NCBI GenBank assembly: GCA_020536535.1
Contig: JAHLWZ010000171.1
Location: forward strand, 1-64,000
DNA: 64,000 nucleotides
DNA from: Pelomyxa schiedti
Taxonomy: Eukaryota > Protista > Evosea
Direction of reading: 5' to 3'
The notes beneath the pieces were generated by a model. That model was not told the DNA's origin and made no database searches. It saw only the letters and a program-made list of their open reading frames with translations. Made by a program: the position numbers and the translations under genes. Position 1 is the first letter of the stretch, and each line of letters begins with the position of its first letter. Shown in pieces: positions 701 to 62,989 of the stretch.

Positions 701-3700
701 ATGGGGAACAACACGAGCGGTCGTTCTCGCGAGCCGAAAATTGCAGATTCCGGCAGCGTGTCGTCAGCACCCTCTATCCCGCCGGTCTCGGCCACCGTCG
801 CCGCGGAAACGACGACACCAACAATCAGCAGCAACAGCAACGGCGCCAGCGCCCAGCCGCCGCCACGAGATCGTCCAAGCGTCGTTGGATACGACGAGTT
901 CCAGAGGGTGTTGCGCGACCGCGCCGCTTTCTTCACAGCGATGTCAAAGTCGGTCACCGTCGCAGAAGTGCAGAACTCGTCGGGGAGTCTCGTTGTGGCC
1001 AGGAACTTCAGGCTCGTGAGGAAAATCGCGCACGGTTGCAATGGTATAAAGCGGTGCATGGGCATGGGTTGGGCTGGGTGTTACTGACGTTCGTGAATTT
1101 TTTTTTTGACAGGGATTGTGTTTGAGGTGAAGTGCATTGGGGAGGGACACCCTCAGTTGTTCAAGGACCAGTCTTATGTCCTCAAGGTTCCTTTCAATTA
1201 TGGTATCAGCACAAAGAGTGTTCAGAACGCCTTTGAGGTGTGCATTTAGATCTCTTCTTTTTTTTTTCCACCCTCTGCCAGAATGAATACCTCATGTCAT
1301 CCACATTGGCCCCACACCCAAATATCAACCAATATTTCTGTCACTTCACAGACCGCATCCCGCAAGAGTATTATGACCACCTCCCAGAGGTGGCCAAGGA
1401 GCTTGCATTTGACAAAGCGAGGAATCGCCTGCATGCGTGCATGTGGGTTGTGCTTGAGCATCACTCAGAGACATTGGAGCAGTTTTTGAGACACCTCAGT
1501 ACCACTGCTCCCCAATCAACCGCCACCATCACCACACCATGGCCAATTGTTCACAAGTACGCCAGGGATATTTGCGCTGCTCTTGTGCATCTTTTCAAGA
1601 ATCGCACGATTCACTTTGACATCAAGTTAGACAACATTGTGATTTCCTCTGTGTGTTTCTCTGTCTTTTCTCCCACTCCATCACACTCAATTGATAAAAC
1701 AACTCAGAACAAGGAGCAGGCGATTTTGATTGATCTTGGGTGTGCAATAAAATTTCCGAAGACAAACAACAACAGGCCGTTCGAGACCGAAACACTGGCT
1801 CTCATGTCTGTGCAAGGAAATCAAAGCCACAGAGCACCTGAGATCATCAATGGAATTGCAGAGTACAAACAGAACCCAGAACGGGGTTCGATGTTTTGTT
1901 GTGACAAGGTACCCCCAAAAAACAACTACCAACTCTGTAATAATCTCATCTCCCGCTATGTCCAAAACAGCAACCTTCATTTGAACTTGGATGCATTTTG
2001 TTTGAACTTGCAATGTGCGGAGAACATCCACTTCCAGGATTCCCTGGTGGCTATGGCCCAAGTGGTCAGATCACATTCTCATTTGAGAGTGAGGAAGAGT
2101 TCCCCATGAAACCACTGGCATTCCCAAAGGAGTTTTGCAACCTTGTCCGATCATTGTTGCAGTGTGACCCTGATAAGAGGATTCCTCTTTTGGAGGCTGC
2201 AGATGTGCTGTCAAACATTGATCCCCCTGAATTCCTCTCATTTTACAATATTGTTATCCCTCAGATAAATGATGCAGGTTTGAACACAAAAACCATGAAG
2301 TTTCTCAATGACAAAAACCAACACAGGAACGATGACAGGCAAGGCAATATGTCAGATTCTTTGTGGTTATGCAAGAGATTGTGCTGACACCCTCCACAGG
2401 GCTCTGGAATTGGAACCGCTGTTCTCACCTGCTTTGCTGATTTTGCATTATCTCAATTCTTGTACTGCTATTACCTCCCCCACCTCTCAACATCCCGGCG
2501 TTCTCCCGGCACTCACAGGGCTAACGGCCACATTCACAGCCACAGATGTGGAATTCATGAGAGCCGTCATCAACAAGGAACACAGGAACACACTCCCTGA
2601 ATTGATTTTGACAGCACTCTGGACAAGGCACATCTCACATGAGGCTTGTCATCGCAACCCCACTGAGTTGCTTCTTAAAAAGGTACCAACCACAACGTTG
2701 GCCTCCCTTTTTTTGAGGTGTGCTGTCCACACACGAAACGAGATGATGATGCAGGCACTTTCACAGTTGGAGGTAGGAGACATTGACTCTGCCCTTGACC
2801 TTGTTGCCAGTGCAACCTCCCTTTTTGAACACGAGATGATGAACACCTGTGTGTGGAAGTCTTCTTTTTATTTTTCCTCTCATCCATGAAACAAACAAAG
2901 CGAAAACAGGCAACAACCATCCTGGGCAATGTGAATACCTCCCTGGACTGTTGTTCCTTTTTCTTCTCTGTCTTGTTGTCAACGACCATGTTGCACTTCA
3001 TCAGCACATACCAGCCAGCCTTGCCTCAGCTTTTTCTCATGCAGTCTCTTCCTCATTTGAATCAATGAGAGACCATTGCACACATGTGTTGAACAACGGG
3101 GAGACTTGGGAAAATAAAGTGGAAGTCACTGCTGAGTGGTCTGAACTTGTCTCAACAGCTGAACCCACAGGCAAGTACTCACTTACAGCTGCTGAACAGA
3201 GCCAAACACTGTGGGCCTGTACGAATTTTGTTGCCATGTGGAATTTCTGCACCTCCAATCAATGTGCTGAACCTATTTGGGTTGAACTAAGTGCAAATGC
3301 TGCAGCATATTCACGTCAATCCACTGTCAGCACACCAGTGGGACACATCCATTGGTGTTCTTCTTCCCTCATGCACCTGGGTATCTGTTACAACTTTGGC
3401 GGTGTTGTCACAGACATTCACAAGGCAGTTTCACTTTACCAGTGGGCTGCTGATGCTGGGAATGTCAGTGCAATGTTCAACCTTGGTGTGTGTTATGTGA
3501 ATGGAGATGGTGTTGACAAAGACAGTCACAAGGCAGTTTCACTTTATCAGAGGGCTGCTGATGCTGGGAATGCCAGAGCAATGTTCACCCTTGGTGTGTG
3601 TTATTGGTATGGTGATGGTGTTGACAAAGACATTCACAAGGCAGTTTCACTTTATCAGAGAGCCGCTGATGCTGGATATTCCATGGCAATGTTCGACCTT

Positions 3701-5034
3701 GGTGTGTGTTATGTGAATGGAGATGGCGTTGACAAAGACAGTCACAAGGCAATTTCACTTTATCAGAGAGCCGCTGATGCTGGGAATGCCAGAGCAATGT
3801 TCACCCTTGGTGTGTGTTATGACAATGGTGATGGTGTTGACAAAGACATTCACAAGGCAGTTTCACTTTATCAGAGGGCTGCTGATGCTGGATATTCCAT
3901 GGCAATGTTCAACCTTGGTGTGTGTTATGCGAATGGAGATGGTGTTGACAAAGACAGTCACAAGGCAGTTTCACTTTACCAGAGAGCCACTGATGCTGGG
4001 GATGCCAGAGCAATGTTCACCCTTGGTCTGTGTTATACAAATGGATCTGGTGTTGACAAAGACATTCACAAGGCAGTTTCACTTTACCAGAGGGCTGCTG
4101 ATGCTGGATATGCCATGGCAATGTGTGCCCTTGGTGTGTGTTATATGAATGGAGATGGTGTTGACAAAGACATTCACAAGGCAGTTTCACTTTATCAGAG
4201 GGCTGCTGATGCTGGGAATGCCATGGCAATGTTCAACCTTGGTGTGTGTTATGTGAATGGAGATGGTGTTGACAAAGACAGTCACAAGGCAGTTTCACTT
4301 TATCAGAGGGCTGATGATGCTGGGAATGCCAGAGCAATGTTCACCCTTGGTGTGTGTTATGTGAATGGAGATGGTGTTGACAAAGACATTCACAAGGCAG
4401 TTTCACTTTATCAGAGGGCTGCTGATGCTGGGGATGCCAAAGCAATGTGCAGCCTTGGTTTGTGTTATTGGTATGGTAATGGTNNNNNNNNNNNNNNNNN
4501 NNNNNNNNNNNNNNNNNNNNNNNNNNNNNNNNNNNNNNNNNNNNNNNNNNNNNNNNNNNNNNNNNNNNNNNNNNNNNNNNNNNTGGTGTGTGTTATGTGA
4601 ATGGAGATGGTGTTGACAAAGACAGTCACAAGGCAGTTTCACTTTATCAGAGGGCTGCTGATGCTGGGAATGCCAGAGCAATGTTCACCCTTGGTGTGTG
4701 TTATGTGAATGGAGATGGTGTTGACAAAGACATTCACAAGGCAGTTTCACTTTATCAGAGGGCTGCTGATGCTGGGAATGTCATGGCAATGTTCTACCTT
4801 GGTGTGTGTTATGCGAATGGAGATGGTGTTGACAAAGACATTCACAAGGCAGTTTCACTTTATCAGAGGGCTGCTGATGCTGGGGATGCCAAAGCAATGT
4901 GCAGCCTTGGTTTGTGTTATTGGTATGGTAATGGTGTTGAAAAGGACATTCAGAGGGCTGTGTTACTACTTGAGAGGGCAGCACAGCTGGGTGATGCTGG
5001 AGCACCTGCCATACTGGGAGTACTGCAATCATGA
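701..5034 (+). CDS. Ser/Thr kinase (PINK1-like) with C-terminal Sel1-like repeat array; multi-exon; spans an assembly gap
   Basis: MGNNTS N-terminus (myristoylation-like). Spliced kinase motifs IAHGCNGIVF, LKVPFNYGI, LAPHPNI, HFDIKLDN, IDLG, RAPE, LLQCDPDKR. First intron 1044-1112 restores frame. 36-aa Sel1 repeats (AMFNLGVCY..GDGVDKD.HKAVSLYQRAADAG) run to TGA at 5034. Confidence 0.85.
3380..5000 (+). repeat. 108-bp coding tandem repeat (Sel1-like), about 15 visible units
   Basis: Near-identical 108-nt units containing GACAAAGACA(G/T)TCACAAGGCAGTTTCACTTTATCAGAG; 11 units before and 4 after the N gap. Confidence 0.95.
4484..4583. other. Assembly gap (100 N)
   Basis: Run of exactly 100 N inside the repeat array. 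Confidence 0.99.
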
Positions 5035-52088: not shown

Positions 52089-53234
52089 TTATCCACCCAA
52101 CACTGCTTCACTTTCCAAAAGCATTATGTTGTGAATTTTTGTTTGGGCCAAAATTTCCTGGTGGGAGCCCAACAGTGCCTGCATCCCTGTTTGGGACAAA
52201 AATACACCAAAGAAGGCCCCACAGTGTTTTCTAGCCAATTCAAGCTGAAGTGTTATGTGTGCCTGGATGGTAGCCAAATCTGAGGAGTACACAGTTGTGT
52301 ACCACAGGCTCCCAGCAACTTTTCTACATAGATAGCCAGTGGATAAAGATGTTTCACTGGTCAGAAACACAGTTTTGTCGTGGTCCTCTAATTCCCTGAG
52401 TCGTTCAAGGCTTACAATTTCAGATTTCCAGTCGTCGATAATGTGGTACACAGGGAACATTCCTGGGCCATTTACAATTGCTTTGTTGGTGGTGATGAGT
52501 GCGTGAACAGCCTCTGCTGTGCAGGGGTGGATTTGTCCCATAACTGTTGGGGAAGCCTCTGCTGTAACACGGGAAAAAGCTAGCTCGGCTTGGGATAAAG
52601 GCACCACCTGAGTCACTGAGCAGAGTACGAATTGTGGTGCAAGACCCAACTTGGATAGAACGTGGAATGATGCCGTGTTATTTGACTCCACAGTAGCCCG
52701 ATATCTTTTCACATCTGGAAAAAAGGTATGAGAAAACGGGTAGGAAGAAGCAAAGCGGAACTTGGGCCAAATTGCCGCTGTGATACAATAGACTGTATGA
52801 AGTCCACAAGAGCTTTTCCCACGCCTCTCCCCTGAAAGTCTACATTCACAATATAGAAGCCATAAGGCACAAGAACAAAGATGCCTCAGAATGAAAGTCA
52901 CAAACCAGGGTGGGTCCTGAGTCCCTTTATCATAATTGTTTGCTGTCCAGGATCCACAAGTTGGCCGCCACACATTCCCACAATATCTCCAGGGGGTTCC
53001 AAAAAAGCACCAACAAGTAACATTTTGTTCCTTCCTGTGTCACCATATTAATCCCCACGCATCTTTGCTTTGGGTTTAAAAAAAAAAGGAAAAGAAACAA
53101 GTACTGTGCAAATCAAACCAGTAATGAAGGACACAAGGCAAATAGTCCATTCCGTTCCACATCCCTGGTGGACTCAGTCTTCTTATTGTTTTCTCGATGT
53201 CCCCTTCATCTAGTAGCCTACAGCGCACAGCCAT
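52089..53234 (-). CDS. GNAT-family N-acetyltransferase (NAT16-like)
   Basis: WNGMDYLP..W; IKGLRTHP; RRGK; ATVESNNTASFHVLSKLG. Confidence 0.65.
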
Positions 53235-53354
53235 TTTCGGTTTTGATTTCAGATAGAGTGAATTTTTAGTCGATAAACGGAAGAAAGTAAAAAAAAAAAT
53301 TTTTTTTTTAGCTTGATACAGAAGGTCCAGTTTACGAAAACAAAAAAAACAAAA

Positions 53355-56300
53355 CTACAAGATGGAGCACCAGCAGGGGAGATGTGATTGTCTGAATTGT
53401 TGTGTCTGTGGTGACTTGGTCTCTGGTGTGCAACATTGTGTGTTTGTGTCTGAGGCATAACAACTATTTACTCTGAGGCTGTTGCGTTCTGCGGTGCTGA
53501 TTCCTGTTGTCTCTGCTGTTGCTGTTCTGTGCCTGAGTCCAGAGTGTTGCTGCTGTTCCACAGAAGCGAATGACGCCTCGGTGTCGTCGTCGTCATCAGC
53601 GAGAGCTGTGCTGGGCTCATCAGGGTTGTCGAAAGTAATGTGGGTCGCCGGAGGCACCCCAGGCGGCGACGGGGCGCCCGGGAAGTCCTTGAACTCCGCC
53701 TTGATCGAGCGCAGGATCTGCGCCGCGCGGAGAAGCTCGGCCATGCTGTGGTGCGAGTTCACGTTGGTGCGGACCCGCGCGGAACCGGGCGGGACCGACC
53801 CCCCGCGCGAAACTATGGGAGTCGCGAACAGCCCGTTGTCGAGCATCCGGCGGGAGAAGGCCACGCAGGTCTCGTCGTTGCCGATGAGGATGGGCACGAT
53901 CGGCGTGCTGGTGCCGAAGGTCACGAAGCCCGCGTCCTCGAGCGCCTTCTTCCACGCCGCGGCCTTGTCCTGTATCATCTTGACGCGCCAGGGCTCCTCG
54001 CGGATTATTCGGAGCCCGGTTCTGGCGATGTGGCACTGCATGTCTGAAATGCCGGTGCTGAAGACGTAGGGCCGGGAGTTGTACACCAGCCAGTCGATCC
54101 CGTCCTTTGGGCCACAGACGTAGCCGCCAAGAGAGCATATGGCCTTGCTGAGGGTCCCTGACTTCCAGTGAGCTGCACCGAACATGTTGAAGTGCTCTTC
54201 GATTCCGCGGCCTGTGGCCCCAAGTACTCCCATAGAGTGTGCTTCGTCAAGTACAAGCACGCAGTCGTACTTTCTGGCGAGATTGTCAAGTACCGGGAGG
54301 TTCGCTATGTGACCCTCCATGCTGAACACGGCATCAGTGACAATAACTTTTCCTGCGTTTTGGGGAGTATCTTGCAACAAAGACTCCAAATGTACATAAT
54401 CCATGTGTTTGAAAGGGACTATACTGGCACCTGAAAGTCTACACCCATCATTGATTGATGCGTGGTTGAGGGCATCACTGAAGATATAATCTCCAGATTG
54501 TGCAACAGCTGAGAGAAGCGTTAGATTAGCAGTAAAGCCCGAAGGGGTGATAAGGGCAGCTTCACAGTGACAAAATTCTGCTATTTCACGCTGCAACTCA
54601 GCTTGTTCAGGCAGGATTCCTGCCTGAAGGGCACTTCCGAGTGAGCTTATAAGTGGTTTATCTTGGCTTGCTTTAATCATTCGCGGGTCATTGAATAATC
54701 CATGGTAGTTATTAGATTGAAGCAGGAGAGCGGTTTTTAGCTCGCCCTTGGTGCCAGGTGCATTTCTGAAGGTAACTTTATTGTTTTTGCCGTAGTGATC
54801 GATATCGAGGTGATGCATAACAATTCCAGCGGATCGCATCTTATTGAGCTCGGTAATAAATGTAGAAATACGACGCTTTTGGGGTGCCGGCCACTCAGAT
54901 AACACTCGGCGGCGAATTGCGCCCGGTGCACTGAGTGCGCCCATAGGAGCAGTGGAAACGGAGGCAGAGCTGGTGGCGGGAGCGGGGGTGGAAGTTAGGG
55001 TTGCAGTAGAAATAGAGCTGGTGGGGGTGACTATGGCTGTTGAGGAAGGTTTTTTGGGATTTTCTGAAGAAGTTTCTGCAATTTTAGGGACTTCCGTGCT
55101 TGCTGCCTTCGCTACGGTATCTGGGGCCGCTGCCTTTGCGGTGACTGTGGACTGTGGTGGACTGTCAACTGAAGGAACTTCTCCCCTCAAAGTGGAAATT
55201 TCCGCAGCGAGCTCTGCAATGGTGATTCCACTGAGGAGTTTCAGTGGTGAAATGCTCACACCAAGTTCAGACATAATCCAAGTGCGTAGGCTGGTTGCCA
55301 CAAGACTGTCAATGCCCTGGGATGCAAGAACCATGTCTTCTCCTATAGTCTGTTCATCTATGCCAAGAGTCTTCGCCAGCCGAGCTTTCAATAGTGAGAA
55401 GACTGACGAATCACCAGAAACGGGCTTCTGGGTGGTTTCGTCCACAAAAGTATTTTCAGAGAAGCGAGCCAAATTTAGGGTTCCTTTATTACTTGGATAA
55501 AATGCATTCATATCTATCGAGAAAACGGAAACTGCAGAATCCGATTCCTTTCGAGAAAGAAGGGTATAGAGACAGGCGAGAGATTGCTTTGCTGGGACTT
55601 GATTAACGCCATCAGCAGCAAGAGTCATTGCCATCCAAGGAGATGTTGTCAAAACTCCTGTTTCTCCAATTGCTCCCCATTGAATGGATAAGGCAGGTAA
55701 CCCAAGGTAATGTCTGTACTGTACGAATTTATCCATAAAATAGTTACCAGCAACGTAGGGTGTTTGCCCTCCCCTTCCAAAGAGAGATGAAATTGACGAG
55801 AACATTACGAATTGCTTCACTGGGTGTGAGAGGGTAACTTTGTGTAAATTCCACGCGCCAAGAAGTTTTGGTAAGCAAACGCGAGAAAATTTCTCACTTG
55901 TAAGGTTATAGAGGGAGCAATCACCGTGAGTAGTAGCACAGTGATAAACACCTTCTATTCTCGGCATCTCACTCTCTACAACTTTAATTGCTGCCACAGC
56001 AGACTCATAGTTACAGACATCAAGAGATAAGCACAGAACTTTACAGCCATGGCGTTTTAGCCATTCAACTTCCTGAGCATCAGAAATTGTTTTCGGTTTA
56101 CCTTCACGGGAAGCTAGTACAATATTTTTTGCTCCGTGGTCATACAACCACTTTGCAGTTGCAAATCCAAATCCACTTAAACCACCAGAAATCAGGTATG
56201 AGGCATTAACATTGCATAACCAACTATGGCCACTGTGTAATGGATGAAGATCTTCTTTGGAAGGTGTGTTGAGAGTTACGGCTATTTTTCCGATATGATC

Positions 56301-59300
56301 TGGATTGCTAAACTGTTGCAAGGCATCTTGGATGTGTGAAGTGTCATACATTTTGACAGGCAAAACACCAGATAACTGGGATGCCAGTTTCAAGATTTCA
56401 GGGCCAAGTTCATAGAACACCTCTTTGTCTGGTATTCGAGATAATTCGACTATGTGGACAGATTGATTGTCAGAAAGTGTGTTGACTGGGAGTTGTTGTC
56501 CTGGGATGAGTTGAATAAACCTTCCATTACTGGCGAGCATTTGTACTGACTGTTCGGCTAGTGCTCCAGTATATGGATTCACTACTATATCTACACCTCT
56601 ACCGAAAGTAAGATCCATAACCTTTTGTGTCAGGCTAGGATCCTTTATCATAAAGACATTCTCCAAGCCTACAACCTGCTTGAGGTGATTCATCTTCGCT
56701 TCGGTGGAGGCAGTAGCTATCACTTGGAGACCGAGTGACCTAGCAAGATGAACAAACGCAAGTCCAACACCACCAGCTGCAGAATGAACCAAAATGAGCT
56801 CTCCTTTCCGTACCTTGGTGCAATGGAGCAGTGAATAAACAGCAGTCCACGATGGAATCATCACTACTGCGGCTTCTTCCGCCGAGAGAGTGGGTGGTTT
56901 TGGAAACACTGAATAGAAAGTTGATATCAAGTGGGAACAGAGGGTTCCCAGACGTGTCATAACAATAACCTCATCTCCAGGTTTGACATGTGTAACTGCA
57001 CTTCCAACACGCTTTACCACACCAGATCCCTCTAGACCAAGCTTGCCATATTTGTGCCAATGATCTGTTGCTCTTCCTACATCAAGCAATCCTTGAGAAA
57101 GAAGGAAGTCCTTGAAGTTGAGACCAGTGTATTTCATCTCTGTGCACACTTCAGTTGGGGCAAGTGCGCGACCAGCATCAAATTTCACAAATCTGATGTG
57201 CTTTGTTCCTTCATCAAGTTGCAACTCCCACCCTTCTTCTGTGACTGTTGGGACAGGTGGCAGTTCAAGGTGCTGAGCTTCGTCTTTCAAATCATAAAAA
57301 TTAACTCGTTCACAAAAGCGTTGATTCTTGTGAATACAAATTTCAGTCTCAACTGGAGCATTCCACCCAAAAAGTATCTCTGAAGAAATGTGAGCTGTAG
57401 ACTCTTGAATGTTAGCAGAAGGGTCAAGGTCTATCACCTTGACACACAGTGACGTTTCTGCACAAATCACACGTGCAACTCCCCAAACAGAAAATAAAGA
57501 CATTCCTGGGAAGTGACTCCTGGTTTGTTGGGGATCTTGAACGCCTTGGGTGATAACAACCACTCCGCATATTATATTAGCTTGGCCTAAAGCTGTGCAC
57601 ATATAGGCCAGATGGAGGGCACCGTCAAGTGAAGCTCTCTTCAGGTCTTCCTCAAGTGGTTCCTGTGTTGAATAGTAGGATGCGGGCCACAGGTCAATTA
57701 TGTGCTCAGTGGATTTTCCAACCGATTTAAACAGTTGAAGCCAATGCTCTTTGTTCAATGGATCTAGGGAGAGAACTGACCCAGTTTCTTCATATGTAGG
57801 ACCCGGCACAATCACAATAACTTCCCGATACTGTGGACGGAAGGAAGAAACAAGAGAGTGCGAAAGTGCACGGCAATTCTCACAAGATAGTACAAGGAGA
57901 GTTCCATTGTGTACTGTTGTTGCTGTGTCAAGGGGGATTTCCAGTGGTTTGGGAATCCATTTTTCAGTACCAAGAGAAATATTTGTTGCTTTATTGGTTA
58001 CACTGCTGAGGCATAGGTTTTTCACCGAAACCAGAGGTTTCCCTGTGATATCCATCAATATGGCATCTCCAACAAGTGATTTCTGAGGGACAAAGTCGCG
58101 GATCTTTGTGTGGCACCAGAAGGAAGAAAAGTTGCGTGCAGAAGACAGTGGTTTTTGTGCGAGAAAGGAGGCAAAGGCCAACTCTATTCCCTTTGACCCT
58201 CCATTATCAGAAACGACAGCAGAGAAGCCTGTCTTGTATAAACGTTGGGTCCATTCCTCTCTGCTTAGACAAACGTGATCCCTATCTTTTGGGTCGTTAG
58301 CCCACCATTGGTCAAAAAGACCAAACAGGAAGTTGAAGAAAACGGAGTCTTTTCTAGTTGGTTCTGTAAGAAGTAACACTCCCCCTGGGGAAAGGGCATC
58401 AAAAATTCTCGATAGCACAGGGCCCACTTCTGAAGCAACGTGGACGACAGCGAATGCTATGATTACATTTACCTCTCTAAGTTCGTCGGGGAAAGGTTTC
58501 GCAATATCAAGAGTACTACATTGCACAAAAGGTATATGCCCGAACATCTCTTTTGCACTGCTTACAAAGAAAGGTGAGACATCAGTAAAAATGTACTCCA
58601 CATCGCATCCATTTGTATAAGCTTCTTGGCAGAGTGGAAGGAATTGTTTTGTTGCTCCACCGGTACCACCACCAATTTCAAGAATTCTAATTCGCTTTCC
58701 GCACTGCAGTAATTTTCTCAATACCGGGAATGAGGTAGTATTAATGTTGCAGGTAACAGACTCAGAATAAAACTTGGAAAGTTTGTCATCCTCAAAGAGG
58801 GAGCCTGAATTGTTCAGAACGTGAACAACATTTTTTCCCACACTGTGGATGATTTCAGATTCTATGGTCATCACTTTGAAAGGGAACAAAGGTATATCAG
58901 GATTGGGCACAAAATCTGTAGAAATGCTCCTGTGCCAATTTATGTACTTCTGCTTACTTGGTGTCCAATTTGTGGTGCCTTCTACCGCTTTGCAAAAAAG
59001 AGCAGAATAATATTTACAGAGTAATATCAAATGAGGATTTTCTTGCAGAGCCATTACGAGTCTGTCTTCTTCAACTTTGTCATACTGTGGGGCAAAGTCA
59101 CCTTTTAATTCCACTTGAAAATCGAAATCCTTGCTTTGAATGGGACTTGGTTGAGAAAGTATTTCGAGCTCGCCCACAGATGCAGGAAGGAGGATATTGG
59201 AACCCCTAAGGTCAGGTACACTTAAGAGACCGCCGATAATGCACTGAAAGCAGCCGTCCAAAACAGTAGGATGAAGAGCGAAGTTTTCTGTAACTGACTC

Positions 59301-62300
59301 CAAAACACTGTGTCGAAAGGTCAGCTGACCCAGTGCTTCATTAAAGTTGGTATTGTTGATGAAAATTTTGGAAATTGGGGAAAATAGAGGCCCATAGTTG
59401 AGGCCCATTTCTGAAAATGCTTTGTAGACTGTTGAGTGTCCTTTTTGTAATTTGCATGCTGTCTTGAGGGCGGAAAGCTCGTCTGTTGACTCTTCAGATG
59501 GGGAACTGACTTCAATATTACATGAGGCACGCTTTGAAAGAGATTTCTCCGATTCAGCTTTAGTGTGAACTTCAAATCCCATGCGCTTTCCAGTTGGGTG
59601 ATAGTTTGTGACAATGCACTTGAACTCTACATAAGAGTCTGGGGATAAGATAACTGGGCTGTGAAAGACAAGATTTGCAACCCGAACTTGACTAGTCCTA
59701 AAGACTTCCCTTGCGGCAAGAGTGGCAAGTTCGGCGTAAAAAGCACCTGGGACTACAATGTCCTCTCCTGCACTGACCTTATGGTCAGATATCCAAGGGT
59801 ACAAGTTTAATGCAACAACGTTACTCCATGAGGGTATTGGGGAATCATCTCGCAGTCCCAACAAACTATGTGTTGCACTTAATCCCCGCCGGTATGTTGT
59901 GAAATGTTTTGGTTCGAAAATTTGAACTGTGTTTTGCCACACTGGCGAGTTAGGTACTTTTATCCACCTCATTTTGTCTTCTGGCTCGATACCAAGAAGC
60001 GGGTGCTTGGAAATATTGTCCCAGTTCAGATTTCCAATGCCGTTTACATAGAGAGTGGAAAGCGCTGATAAGATCACGTGGCGTTCAGGCTTGTTTCTCT
60101 CGATTGAATGCACAATAAAGGTAGGAGTTTTTGGCGTCGAGGCTGCAGTTGCTTCAAGGTATAGACTGAGAACAGGATGATTCGCCAGCTCTACAAACAC
60201 GTTGAATTTTTCCTCAAGAGCTGATAAAATCGCAGGGTAGAAAAGAACACTGCATCGAACATTTTTCCACCAGTAGTCTGGGCCTGGAGGATCGTGAAGG
60301 ACTTTTCCCAGGACAGTGGAGTACATAGGGATTTTTGGATGAGGAGCGGGGGCTAGAGTCTGTAACTCTTGAATTAATTGCTCTTTGATAGGCTCTGTTT
60401 GATAACTGTGGAAGGCATTTTGCACATGTAAAAATTTTGCAAACTGATCTTTTGCTTTCAGTGTTTTTTCAACAGATGCGAGTGCTGCAGGATCCCCTGC
60501 CAAAACAACAGAGTCAGCACTATTCACAGAAGCAATATCCACATTGGAAACACCAGTTATCAACTCTGCAGCTTTGGCTGCAGACATATTAATTGCCAGC
60601 ATTCTGCCCTTGCCACTTAAAGCCTGTTGTAGTCTAGATCTGACGCTGATTACAAGGACACCTTCCTCCAATGTCAAATAACCACAAGCAACAGCTGCAG
60701 CTACTTCGCCAACACTGTGACCAACCACAGCATCAGGAACTATCCCCCAGTGTCGCCAGAGGGAATTCAGGCCAATTTGAACAGCAAAGATCAATACTTG
60801 TGCAAACTGAGTCTGATTGACGCGTGACTCTGCTTCAGTTTTGTGCAGCTCTTCCACTACTGACCATCCCATCACCCTTTTGCCAATGACGTCAACTTTA
60901 GAAAGTGCATCATGAAAAATTGCGTCCTCAGCATACAGCTGCCTCCCCATAGCATACCATTGTGGTCCCTGGCCAGAAAACACAAATAAAACCTTGTTAT
61001 TTCTCTTCAGAAATTGAGCTGTGCCTGATTTCCAACCATCCTCTTGCGCTTTTGGATTTTGGATGAAACTTTCCAGGGATTGGCACATTTCAGAAGGATT
61101 TCTTCCAAGTACAACAAGACGTTGTGAGTAGTGATTTGATCGTTTCCCAGCAGAGTAAATAATATCTGATAAGGAAGCTTTGCTTGTAGAAAGAAAACTG
61201 TGCCACTTTTTTGCACATCCACTTAGAGCTGTGCTTGTGTGTGCGGATATCGGTAAACAATAAATCGGTTTTTCTCCAGGGATACTCTCCTCGGAGAAAG
61301 TGGGTGATGGTGGTGTCTGTAATGGTGGGATGTACTCCTCTATAACTGCAGTGGCATTGCTGCCACCAAAGCCAAATGAATTAACAACAGCTATCTTTCT
61401 TTTGGTCACTTTGCTCCACTGTTCTCCTTTCCAGGGGATTGCAAGGCTTCCAAGATTGAAATGGGGATCCAGTGGCACTAATCTTTGCGGGAATATTTCA
61501 TTATGCTGATTTTTGTTTTTGTTGGTTTAGTGAACAAAAAAGTCTAGGAGATTTCGGGAACCTGAATCATGAGAAGAACTTTTGTAAGACTTGCTAACCC
61601 TGCTGCTGCTTCAGTGTGTCCAATATTCGATTTGACTGATCCTATGAAACAGGGACCTCTGGTGCCAACAGCGTCTTCACTAAACACGCTCCTGAGAGTG
61701 TCAACCTCGATGGGATCACCTACTGGTGTTCCTGTGCCATGGGCTTCGATATATGTTACGTCTCTGGGATCAACATGGGCAACTTTGAGAGCCTGCTGCA
61801 AGACAGTTATTTGCCCCGTTGATGATGGGCGATTAATAAACTGCTTGCTACCGTCATGGTTATTGGCAGTGCCTGCTATGACACAATAAATATGGTCGCC
61901 ATTTGCCACAGCATCGGAGAGAGGCTTTTGGTGAAGTTGGTAAGGTTTTATTTATTTTGACTTATAATGGCGCTTCTTTTTCTCTACACTGTTTTAAATG
62001 CAGTATATAATTCTAAGTTTTGTGTTGTGTTGCGCTGCTTTTGAATTGCAGGGTGTATTAAAGTGTTTATGTTTAGGGACGCACTTTCAATAAGAAAGCC
62101 GAGCCACCTTCAGCCCTGACATATCCATCAGCGTTGGAGCCAAAAGTGTTGCACCTGCCAGAGGAAGTTGTCATTCCGGCCCTGGAGACTGCCAGAGAGA
62201 ACTGGGGCAGCAGAAGCTGGTTCGAAGCAGCCACCAAGGCCGAGGAGCACTCGCCCGCCCGCATGCTGCTGTACGCCAGGTGCAGCGCCACCAGGGAGCC

Positions 62301-62989
62301 GCTGCAGGCCGTGTCGACCGTGAGGCTGGGCCCGCGGAAGTCGAAGAACCACGACAGGCGGTTGCTCAGCATCGCGAGGGCCGCGCCGTTGGCAGTGTAG
62401 GGGGAGATGTCCGGCTCGCTCTGCATCAGTATCACCGGCCAGTCCACCCCGAAGCTGGCCACAAACACGCCCGTCGAGTTCCCCCCGGGCAGCACCTTCC
62501 TCGTGCACGAGGAGGACGAGGCGACGGGGAAGGGCTCCCCGGCGTCTGCGAGGGCCTCGCAGGAGAGCTGCAGGAGTTGGTGCTGGACTGGGCCCAGGAA
62601 GGAGGCTTCTTTGCCGGAGAGGCCGAAGAAGGAGGGGTCGGCGCTGGTGACCGGCTCCTCGAGGGTGCCGGCGTAGGGGGTTTTGATCTTGCCTGGCCCG
62701 CAGTGCACGCCCGTGTCGAGCTTGTAGGCCGGGATCTGCCGAACGGCGTCGGCGCATTCGTGCAGGAGCTGGTAATATTCGTCGAGGTTTCTCGCGGTGG
62801 GAAATTTACAGCTGGTGCCGATTACTGCCACGAGAAATCTGTTCGTTCGTTATTGGTGGGGTGGAATGTTTAATTGGGGTGTCGGCGGAAAGGAAAAGAA
62901 AACCGCGAAGTAATGATGACGGGAATAGGAACGGTTTGGGAAAATGTGGAAAACAACCTGTCGTTGCCTGCATCATCACCACCGGACAT
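53355..62989 (-). CDS. Highly reducing type I polyketide synthase fused to a PLP-dependent alpha-oxoamine synthase (KS-AT-DH/cMT-ER-KR-ACP-AOS), about 3,099 aa
   Basis: Exons 62989-62958, 62838-62085, 61924-61562, 61505-53355 join in frame. KS: DTACSGS, EAHGTGT, NIGHTE. AT: GHSVG, AFHS. DH: DHKV..VVPGA, HPTVLDGCFQ. MT: LEIGGGTGG. ER: HSAAGGVG. KR: GGLSGFG, QTPYVAGN. ACP: GIDSL. AOS: NHASI, DAVFSMEG, DEAHS, TLSKA. Confidence 0.95.

Follow-up and report, generated by a model that had tools for sequence, protein, structure and literature searches.

A polyketide synthase of the protist Pelomyxa schiedti that ends in an alpha-oxoamine synthase: a candidate membrane-anchored synthase of a specialised amino-lipid

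What is made by a reducing polyketide synthase (PKS) whose last domain is a PLP enzyme, and how does the chain leave it? The question is raised by a minus-strand gene of Pelomyxa schiedti (62989-53355) whose product, KAH3766105.1 (3099 aa), carries the GenBank label 'type I polyketide synthase'. The window, meaning the whole 64-kb stretch of DNA analysed, is part of a 220-kb contig (C171) that carries eukaryotic genes, in an assembly of 52.4 Mb and 5337 contigs. An exhaustive search of GT-AG introns yielded a single exon set that reproduces KAH3766105.1, with four exons separated by introns of 119, 160 and 56 nt. The features of the gene are the following.

62958-62989, minus strand: exon 1, with the ATG at 62989, from the GT-AG set matching KAH3766105.1
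62085-62838, minus strand: exon 2, KS amino-terminal half, catalytic Cys189 at 62306 (PF00109, E 3e-54)
61562-61924, minus strand: exon 3, KS carboxyl-terminal half with His324 and His365
53355-61505, minus strand: exon 4, from the end of KS to the stop codon, 8.15 kb, intronless and without internal stop
60042-60986, minus strand: acyltransferase (AT), malonyl-type by its GHSVG and NAFHS motifs
59145-59870, minus strand: dehydratase (DH) part 1, profile positions 1-236 of 313, His958 and Asp1133
58140-59132, minus strand: C-methyltransferase (MT), inserted within the second hot-dog of DH; best PDB match CurJ cMT (E 1.6e-26)
57981-58127, minus strand: DH part 2, covering the last strands; profile 237-285, in direct continuation of part 1
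57180-57932 (approximate bounds), minus strand: structural pseudo-KR subdomain, from a weak PF21394 match and its position in the module
56265-57158 (approximate bounds), minus strand: enoylreductase (ER), by Pfam
55665-56204, minus strand: ketoreductase (KR), by Pfam
55200-55394, minus strand: acyl carrier protein (ACP), Ser2450
54915-55187, minus strand: linker rich in Ser/Thr/Ala/Pro, flexible; identity to the paralog 30%; covered by RNA contigs
53691-54914, minus strand: alpha-oxoamine synthase (AOS), His2731, Asp2803, His2806, Lys2837 and Arg2962
53373-53690, minus strand: low-complexity acidic/polar tail, little conserved
53358-53372, minus strand: carboxyl-terminal W-CaaX motif WCSIL, a predicted prenylation site

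The fusion of ACP and AOS is independent of splice prediction because everything from the KS carboxyl terminus to the stop codon lies within the last exon. The RNA evidence consists of assembled contigs from one sample, sequenced in two single-cell RNA-seq runs; they are strandless and lie on an intron-free stretch of the gene, whose 3' part they cover. One contig (53316-56699) runs ungapped through half of ER, KR, ACP, linker, AOS and the stop codon. It does not reach KS, and its 3' end coincides with a repeat at which reads are truncated. RNA contigs and gene differ by two SNPs, both synonymous. It is barely conceivable that the protein is an artefact, be it through chimeric assembly, bacterial contamination or the merging of two genes. 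The assembly comes from single cells of an endosymbiont-bearing host and the AOS looks bacterial, but the gene has three GT-AG introns within a 220-kb contig of eukaryotic character, the junction is spanned by a single contig of DNA as well as of RNA, and an independent paralog has an intron inside its AOS.

Downstream, on the same strand and starting 120 bp past the PKS stop, an intron-containing gene (52089-53234) codes a GNAT-like acetyltransferase (Hisat_C match, E 8e-6) that could N-acetylate an amine product. Read-through into this ORF was rejected, as this ORF starts from an ATG of its own (53234) and the RNA contigs end at 53316; no RNA contig lies on its first 200 bases. Elsewhere in the window, a Sel1-repeat protein gene (2843-4597, plus strand) adjoins a gap of 100 N at 4484-4583.

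The Pfam domains succeed each other in the order KS, AT, DH, MT, ER, KR, ACP and Aminotran_1_2 (53715-54728; E 3e-44). The motifs of KS (DTAC189S, H324, H365) and AT (GHS647VG, NAFHS) are intact, DH keeps its catalytic residues (H958, D1133) and MT its LEIGGGTG motif together with its His and Glu, while the motifs of ER (HSAAGGVG), KR (GGLSGFG and YVAGN) and ACP (GIDS2450L) are all present. KAH3766105.1 is a highly reducing type I PKS with the organization KS-AT-DH-(MT)-ER-KR-ACP. The module is single and none neighbours it within the 64-kb window, which suggests that it is used iteratively. Behind the ACP, a linker made up to 63% of Ser, Thr, Ala and Pro leads to the AOS (motifs SNNY, NH2731AS, D2803EAH2806S, TLSK2837A, R2962), and no TE or R domain was found in the gene after it. 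The sequence-only reading, which had proposed a full reducing PKS with intact catalytic motifs ending in such an enzyme in place of a thioesterase or reductase, is borne out on both points.

The position of the MT is unusual. A survey of PKS methyltransferases placed them only in AT-KR, DH-ER or DH-KR linkers (PMC2613160). In KAH3766105.1 the MT does not follow a complete DH: on a profile built from 66 contiguous DH domains, residues 929-1170 match positions 1-236 and residues 1510-1558 match positions 237-285, so that the DH is interrupted by the MT between profile positions 236 and 237. With the MT excised, the DH scores 168 bits instead of 139. The insert itself resembles a cMT (CurJ, E 1.6e-26). 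The same split is found in a sister PKS on contig C151, while the DH is unbroken in all 19 non-Pelomyxa MT-bearing PKSs checked, bacterial and fungal. A single-sequence AlphaFold model of the DH-MT-DH region (pLDDT 35) was discarded.

To which family does the terminal domain belong? Its best PDB sequence matches are ThAOS (7POA) and Sphingobacterium SPT (3A2B/8GUH), with E-values of 1e-64 to 1e-60 and 33-37% identity to ThAOS and bacterial homodimeric SPT. The same two enzymes are the best fold matches of its structural model (pLDDT 87; TM ~0.89). The PLP residues of SmSPT are His138, Asp210, His213 and Lys244 (PMC10196870) and the carboxylate-binding Arg of ThAOS is Arg366 (PMC11906848); the alignment shows equivalents of the former four in the AOS, and Arg2962 matches the latter. 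Sequence and model thus identify the domain as a fold type I alpha-oxoamine synthase, closest to BioF/SPT/KBL/ALAS and predicted to carry out a decarboxylative condensation, in agreement with the family placement made at first sight. All PLP and substrate residues of Sphingobacterium SPT and ThAOS are kept; unlike these enzymes, the Pelomyxa AOS is fused to a PKS and scores below every curated NCBIfam cut-off. Its best score is for bioF (320 bits, cut-off 426), followed by KBL (278 against 460) and SerpalmtaseCFB (264 against 640), and ALAS is not passed either. Since no curated cut-off is passed, SPT included, the amino acid substrate is not predictable. A Ser at the selectivity position, counted from the alignment as ThAOS Val79 and SmSPT Ser81, would fit a small amino acid without specifying which.

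The closest relative of the AOS is a stand-alone 422-aa protein of Mastigamoeba balamuthi, annotated KBL-like (55-57% identity). The next ones are P0083, a partial ER-KR-ACP-AOS protein on a JGI contig with the look of a eukaryotic transcript (single ORF, AATAAA near its end), and L135 (JGI 3300016744), an intron-bearing contig coding a eukaryotic PKS with the order ER-KR-ACP...ECH-ECH-AOS-AOS-HMGS-HMGS. The tandem AOS of L135 suggests an LCB1/LCB2-like pair in one chain; its first AOS misses the PLP-stacking His. In the AOS tree Pelomyxa and Mastigamoeba group together (support 100/99) and are joined by the L135 domains (96/76), while the placement of P0083 is unstable (SH-aLRT 99 in a large quick tree, 85/9 in a careful one). 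The LCB2-like set forms its own clade (100/100) that excludes the Pelomyxa AOS, and AOS domains of RedL and cyanobacterial fusions form another (99/96), apart from those of Pelomyxa, Mastigamoeba, P0083 and L135. The phylogeny proposed along with the sequence-only reading sets the AOS with Mastigamoeba and, less firmly, with the two other eukaryotic PKS-AOS proteins, away from LCB2 and bacterial fusions. An ER-KR tree joined the three eukaryotic lineages weakly (SH-aLRT 90, with a long-branch warning) and was not relied on.

Fusion of an AOS to a PKS is not unique to Pelomyxa, contrary to what had been supposed: bacterial PKS-AOS fusions are long known and were surveyed as a class in 2013 (PMC3870968), and at least six cyanobacterial genomes, together with other bacterial contigs, encode the order KS-AT-DH-ER-KR-ACP-AOS in a single ORF. 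Nearly all of 80 long PKS-AOS matches are of RedL type, and the matches listed from a scan of JGI metagenomes have 39-45% identity and a bacterial look. The RedL/MarL-type prodiginine enzymes (FAAL-ACP-KS-AT-ACP-AOS) likewise have the AOS in cis after an ACP as release step, but they are FAAL-primed, non-iterative and have no reductive loop, and the RedL AOS clade is well supported and separate from the Pelomyxa AOS. The S. coelicolor CAA16183 cluster corresponds to RedL, with glycine chemistry. SxtA, TamD and PigH are further enzymes with an AOS fused in cis after an ACP. The cyanobacterial proteins (Thermosynechococcaceae MGB7414820.1, Okeania, Oculatellaceae) share domain order, single ORF and full reduction with KAH3766105.1, but they have no MT match, no CaaX and a contiguous DH where tested; their AOS groups with RedL and their ER-KR lies elsewhere in the tree than that of Pelomyxa. 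Cyanobacterial and Pelomyxa proteins thus apparently arose by independent fusions. Among amoebozoans, the dictyostelid Steely enzymes are highly reducing PKSs that also bear a second C-C bond-forming enzyme at their carboxyl terminus, which is a type III PKS and not a PLP enzyme.

In fungi, chain release by an AOS acting in trans was proposed for highly reducing PKSs without TE, the pairs being Fum1/Fum8, SphB/SphA and MyrB/MyrA (PMC13612406). These pairs have a KS-AT-DH-MT-ER-KR-ACP module without TE and a PLP-dependent AOS, as in Pelomyxa, where all is in one polypeptide with the MT inside DH, a CaaX motif, an AOS distant from SphA and no recognised cluster. By analogy with them and with RedL, the Pelomyxa AOS very probably releases the PKS-made chain as an aminoketone, a reading favoured by the lack of a TE or R domain since an AOS frees the chain of those fungal highly reducing PKSs that have neither (PMC13612406). 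It is weakened by the stand-alone Mastigamoeba relative, which implies that fusion to a PKS is dispensable for enzymes of the clade. It is highly doubtful that the AOS would instead act on free short acyl-CoA in the manner of KBL, BioF or ThAOS, or that PKS and AOS together would make a biotin precursor (pimeloyl-ACP to KAPA). The annotation of this stand-alone relative as KBL-like and the best NCBIfam score, to bioF, speak for such roles, while a separate KBL-like gene on contig C466 and the fusion directly after the ACP kept in three lineages speak against them. For biotin in particular, the genome has no BioD and the MT is cMT-like, not BioC, so that this idea was set aside as unlikely. The only BATS match in the genome is perhaps that of a hydrogenase maturase.

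About ten loci of the genome code type I PKSs. One, on contig C291, is a full paralog with 78-82% identity in AT, DH, ER and KR, 72% in MT, 86% in ACP, 30% in the linker and about 90% in the AOS, which was searched by its first exon alone. Preservation of the AOS next to such a diverged linker favours an amino-lipid synthase. Two further copies of the same PKS body (62-63% identity), on contigs C753 and C151, lack the AOS and continue into a weak SAT-like domain, a carrier and condensation-adenylation NRPS modules, an alternative way of amino acid addition that also favours the amino-lipid reading. The ACP of the C753 copy has Gly in place of Asp in its DSL motif. On both contigs a divergent KS-AT-ACP gene stands head-to-head with the PKS. 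A third PKS copy, at C151:11200-21199, has frame breaks in KS and AT, ends after AT and is likely a pseudogene.

The genome also carries LCB1 and LCB2, the presence of which was to be checked, in three loci with LCB2 followed by LCB1.

C253:65434-67951: tandem LCB2-then-LCB1 locus
C171:104061-106344: tandem LCB2-then-LCB1 locus, about 40 kb from the PKS-AOS gene on the same contig
C800:37639-39640: tandem LCB2-then-LCB1 locus

They probably code single-chain SPTs like the 951-aa LCB2-LCB1 protein of M. balamuthi. The 'self-contained route to sphingoid lipids' proposed from the sequence therefore stands as to its single chain of reducing PKS and AOS and is weakened as to self-containment; with three canonical loci, the enzyme probably serves a specialised amino-lipid route and not the main sphingolipid entry. 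It is improbable that Pelomyxa obtains its long-chain bases or fatty acids de novo chiefly from the fusion, a FAS-SPT channel beside which LCB2-LCB1 would work on scavenged acyl-CoA. The fully reducing module, the RNA contigs in single-cell libraries and the two conserved copies would suit such a role, as would the KS loci examined, incompletely parsed, in which no FAS of evident animal or fungal type was recognised. It is opposed by the elongases and three LCB2/LCB1 loci of the genome, by Mastigamoeba having a single-chain SPT plus a stand-alone copy of the AOS, and by the intact MT, which points to a branched, specialised product.

Where would this product be made? The carboxyl termini of KAH3766105.1 (WCSIL), the C291 paralog (WCSVM) and P0083 (WCVIS) end in the CaaX boxes CSIL, CSVM and CVIS, the former two with Ser instead of an aliphatic residue at a1. 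In the paralog the 45 residues before WCSVM barely align with KAH3766105.1 and yet the CaaX is kept; WC at that position occurs in only 2 of the 483 proteins compared. WCSIL, which the sequence-only reading had passed over, is thus a predicted CaaX prenylation signal, and prenyltransferase-family (PF00432) genes occur on three contigs of the genome. An anchor of this kind would suit a membrane lipid better than a secreted inhibitor. Our preferred reading, moderately favoured, is that of a membrane-anchored single-chain synthase of a specialised amino-lipid, to which conservation of the CaaX in three proteins with diverged tails and the presence of prenyltransferase-family, PPTase-family, TLC-family and elongase genes lend weight.

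The same chemistry could yield a defensive or signalling sphinganine analogue (of the fumonisin, sphingofungin or 2-amino-3-ol types) directed at microbes, symbionts or predators. Fungal highly reducing PKS and AOS pairs make compounds of this type (PMC13612406), the MT motifs are intact, the sister genes are PKS-NRPS hybrids in a genome with about ten type I PKS loci, and resistant copies could be among the three LCB2/LCB1 loci. We consider this unlikely. The fungal clusters assemble a separate AOS with PKS, KDSR and tailoring genes, whereas the PKS-AOS gene of Pelomyxa has unrelated ORFs and the GNAT-like gene for neighbours, and among the longer ORFs of the window no cluster of tailoring, transporter or KDSR-like genes was recognised. 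Furthermore, the AOS is distant from SphA (E 7e-16 against 1e-60 for bacterial SPT) and the CaaX suggests a membrane site.

For a membrane-anchored amino-lipid synthase the following sequence of events can be envisaged. The single module, once phosphopantetheinylated, would work through iterative rounds, consuming malonyl-CoA, NADPH and probably SAM, until its ACP carries an acyl chain that is largely saturated and probably methyl-branched. Dimerization of the PKS would pair two AOS domains into a homodimeric PLP active site, where a small amino acid, be it Ser, Ala or Gly, would lose CO2 as it condenses with the acyl-ACP; the chain would leave as a 2-amino-3-keto long-chain base, or in the 1-amino-2-keto form with Gly. 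Prenylation of the CaaX would tether the enzyme to the membrane, where the product would be reduced and N-acylated to a specialised sphingoid/ceramide-like lipid, beside the ordinary LCB2-LCB1 route.

Eukaryotic long-chain bases are made from acyl-CoA by LCB1/LCB2 or, in fungi, by a PKS and a separate AOS. AOS chemistry and the principle of PKS-AOS fusion are known already. The literature searched, outside which most subscription papers lie, yielded no account of PKSs from Pelomyxa, of a PKS fused to an AOS in a eukaryote, of an MT inside DH or of the eukaryotic, prenylation-tagged form that combines them. It is possible, albeit short of probable, that archamoebae and no fewer than two further protist lineages share a eukaryotic family of prenylated PKS-AOS megasynthases in which one protein builds methyl-branched sphingoid bases of its own, with malonyl-CoA and an amino acid as precursors, as a second sphingolipid entry that would bypass FAS and LCB1/LCB2 on a PKS with an MT grafted into its DH. 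If so, anaerobic protists would have a compact, one-protein, membrane-tagged route to sphingoid-like lipids, useful as a chassis for amino-lipids and for studying how an ACP passes its chain to an AOS in cis. How megasynthases acquire domains is a question touched by both the MT inside DH and the exchange of AOS for NRPS tails on one PKS body.

No product of the cyanobacterial PKS-AOS proteins was found in the literature searched; their fully reducing genes (L136-L141, L133) may belong to a route to sphingoids or amino-lipids in cyanobacteria. A bacterial protein of PfaA order (KS-AT-ACP-KR-DH; L044), coded within an operon, also ends in an AOS.
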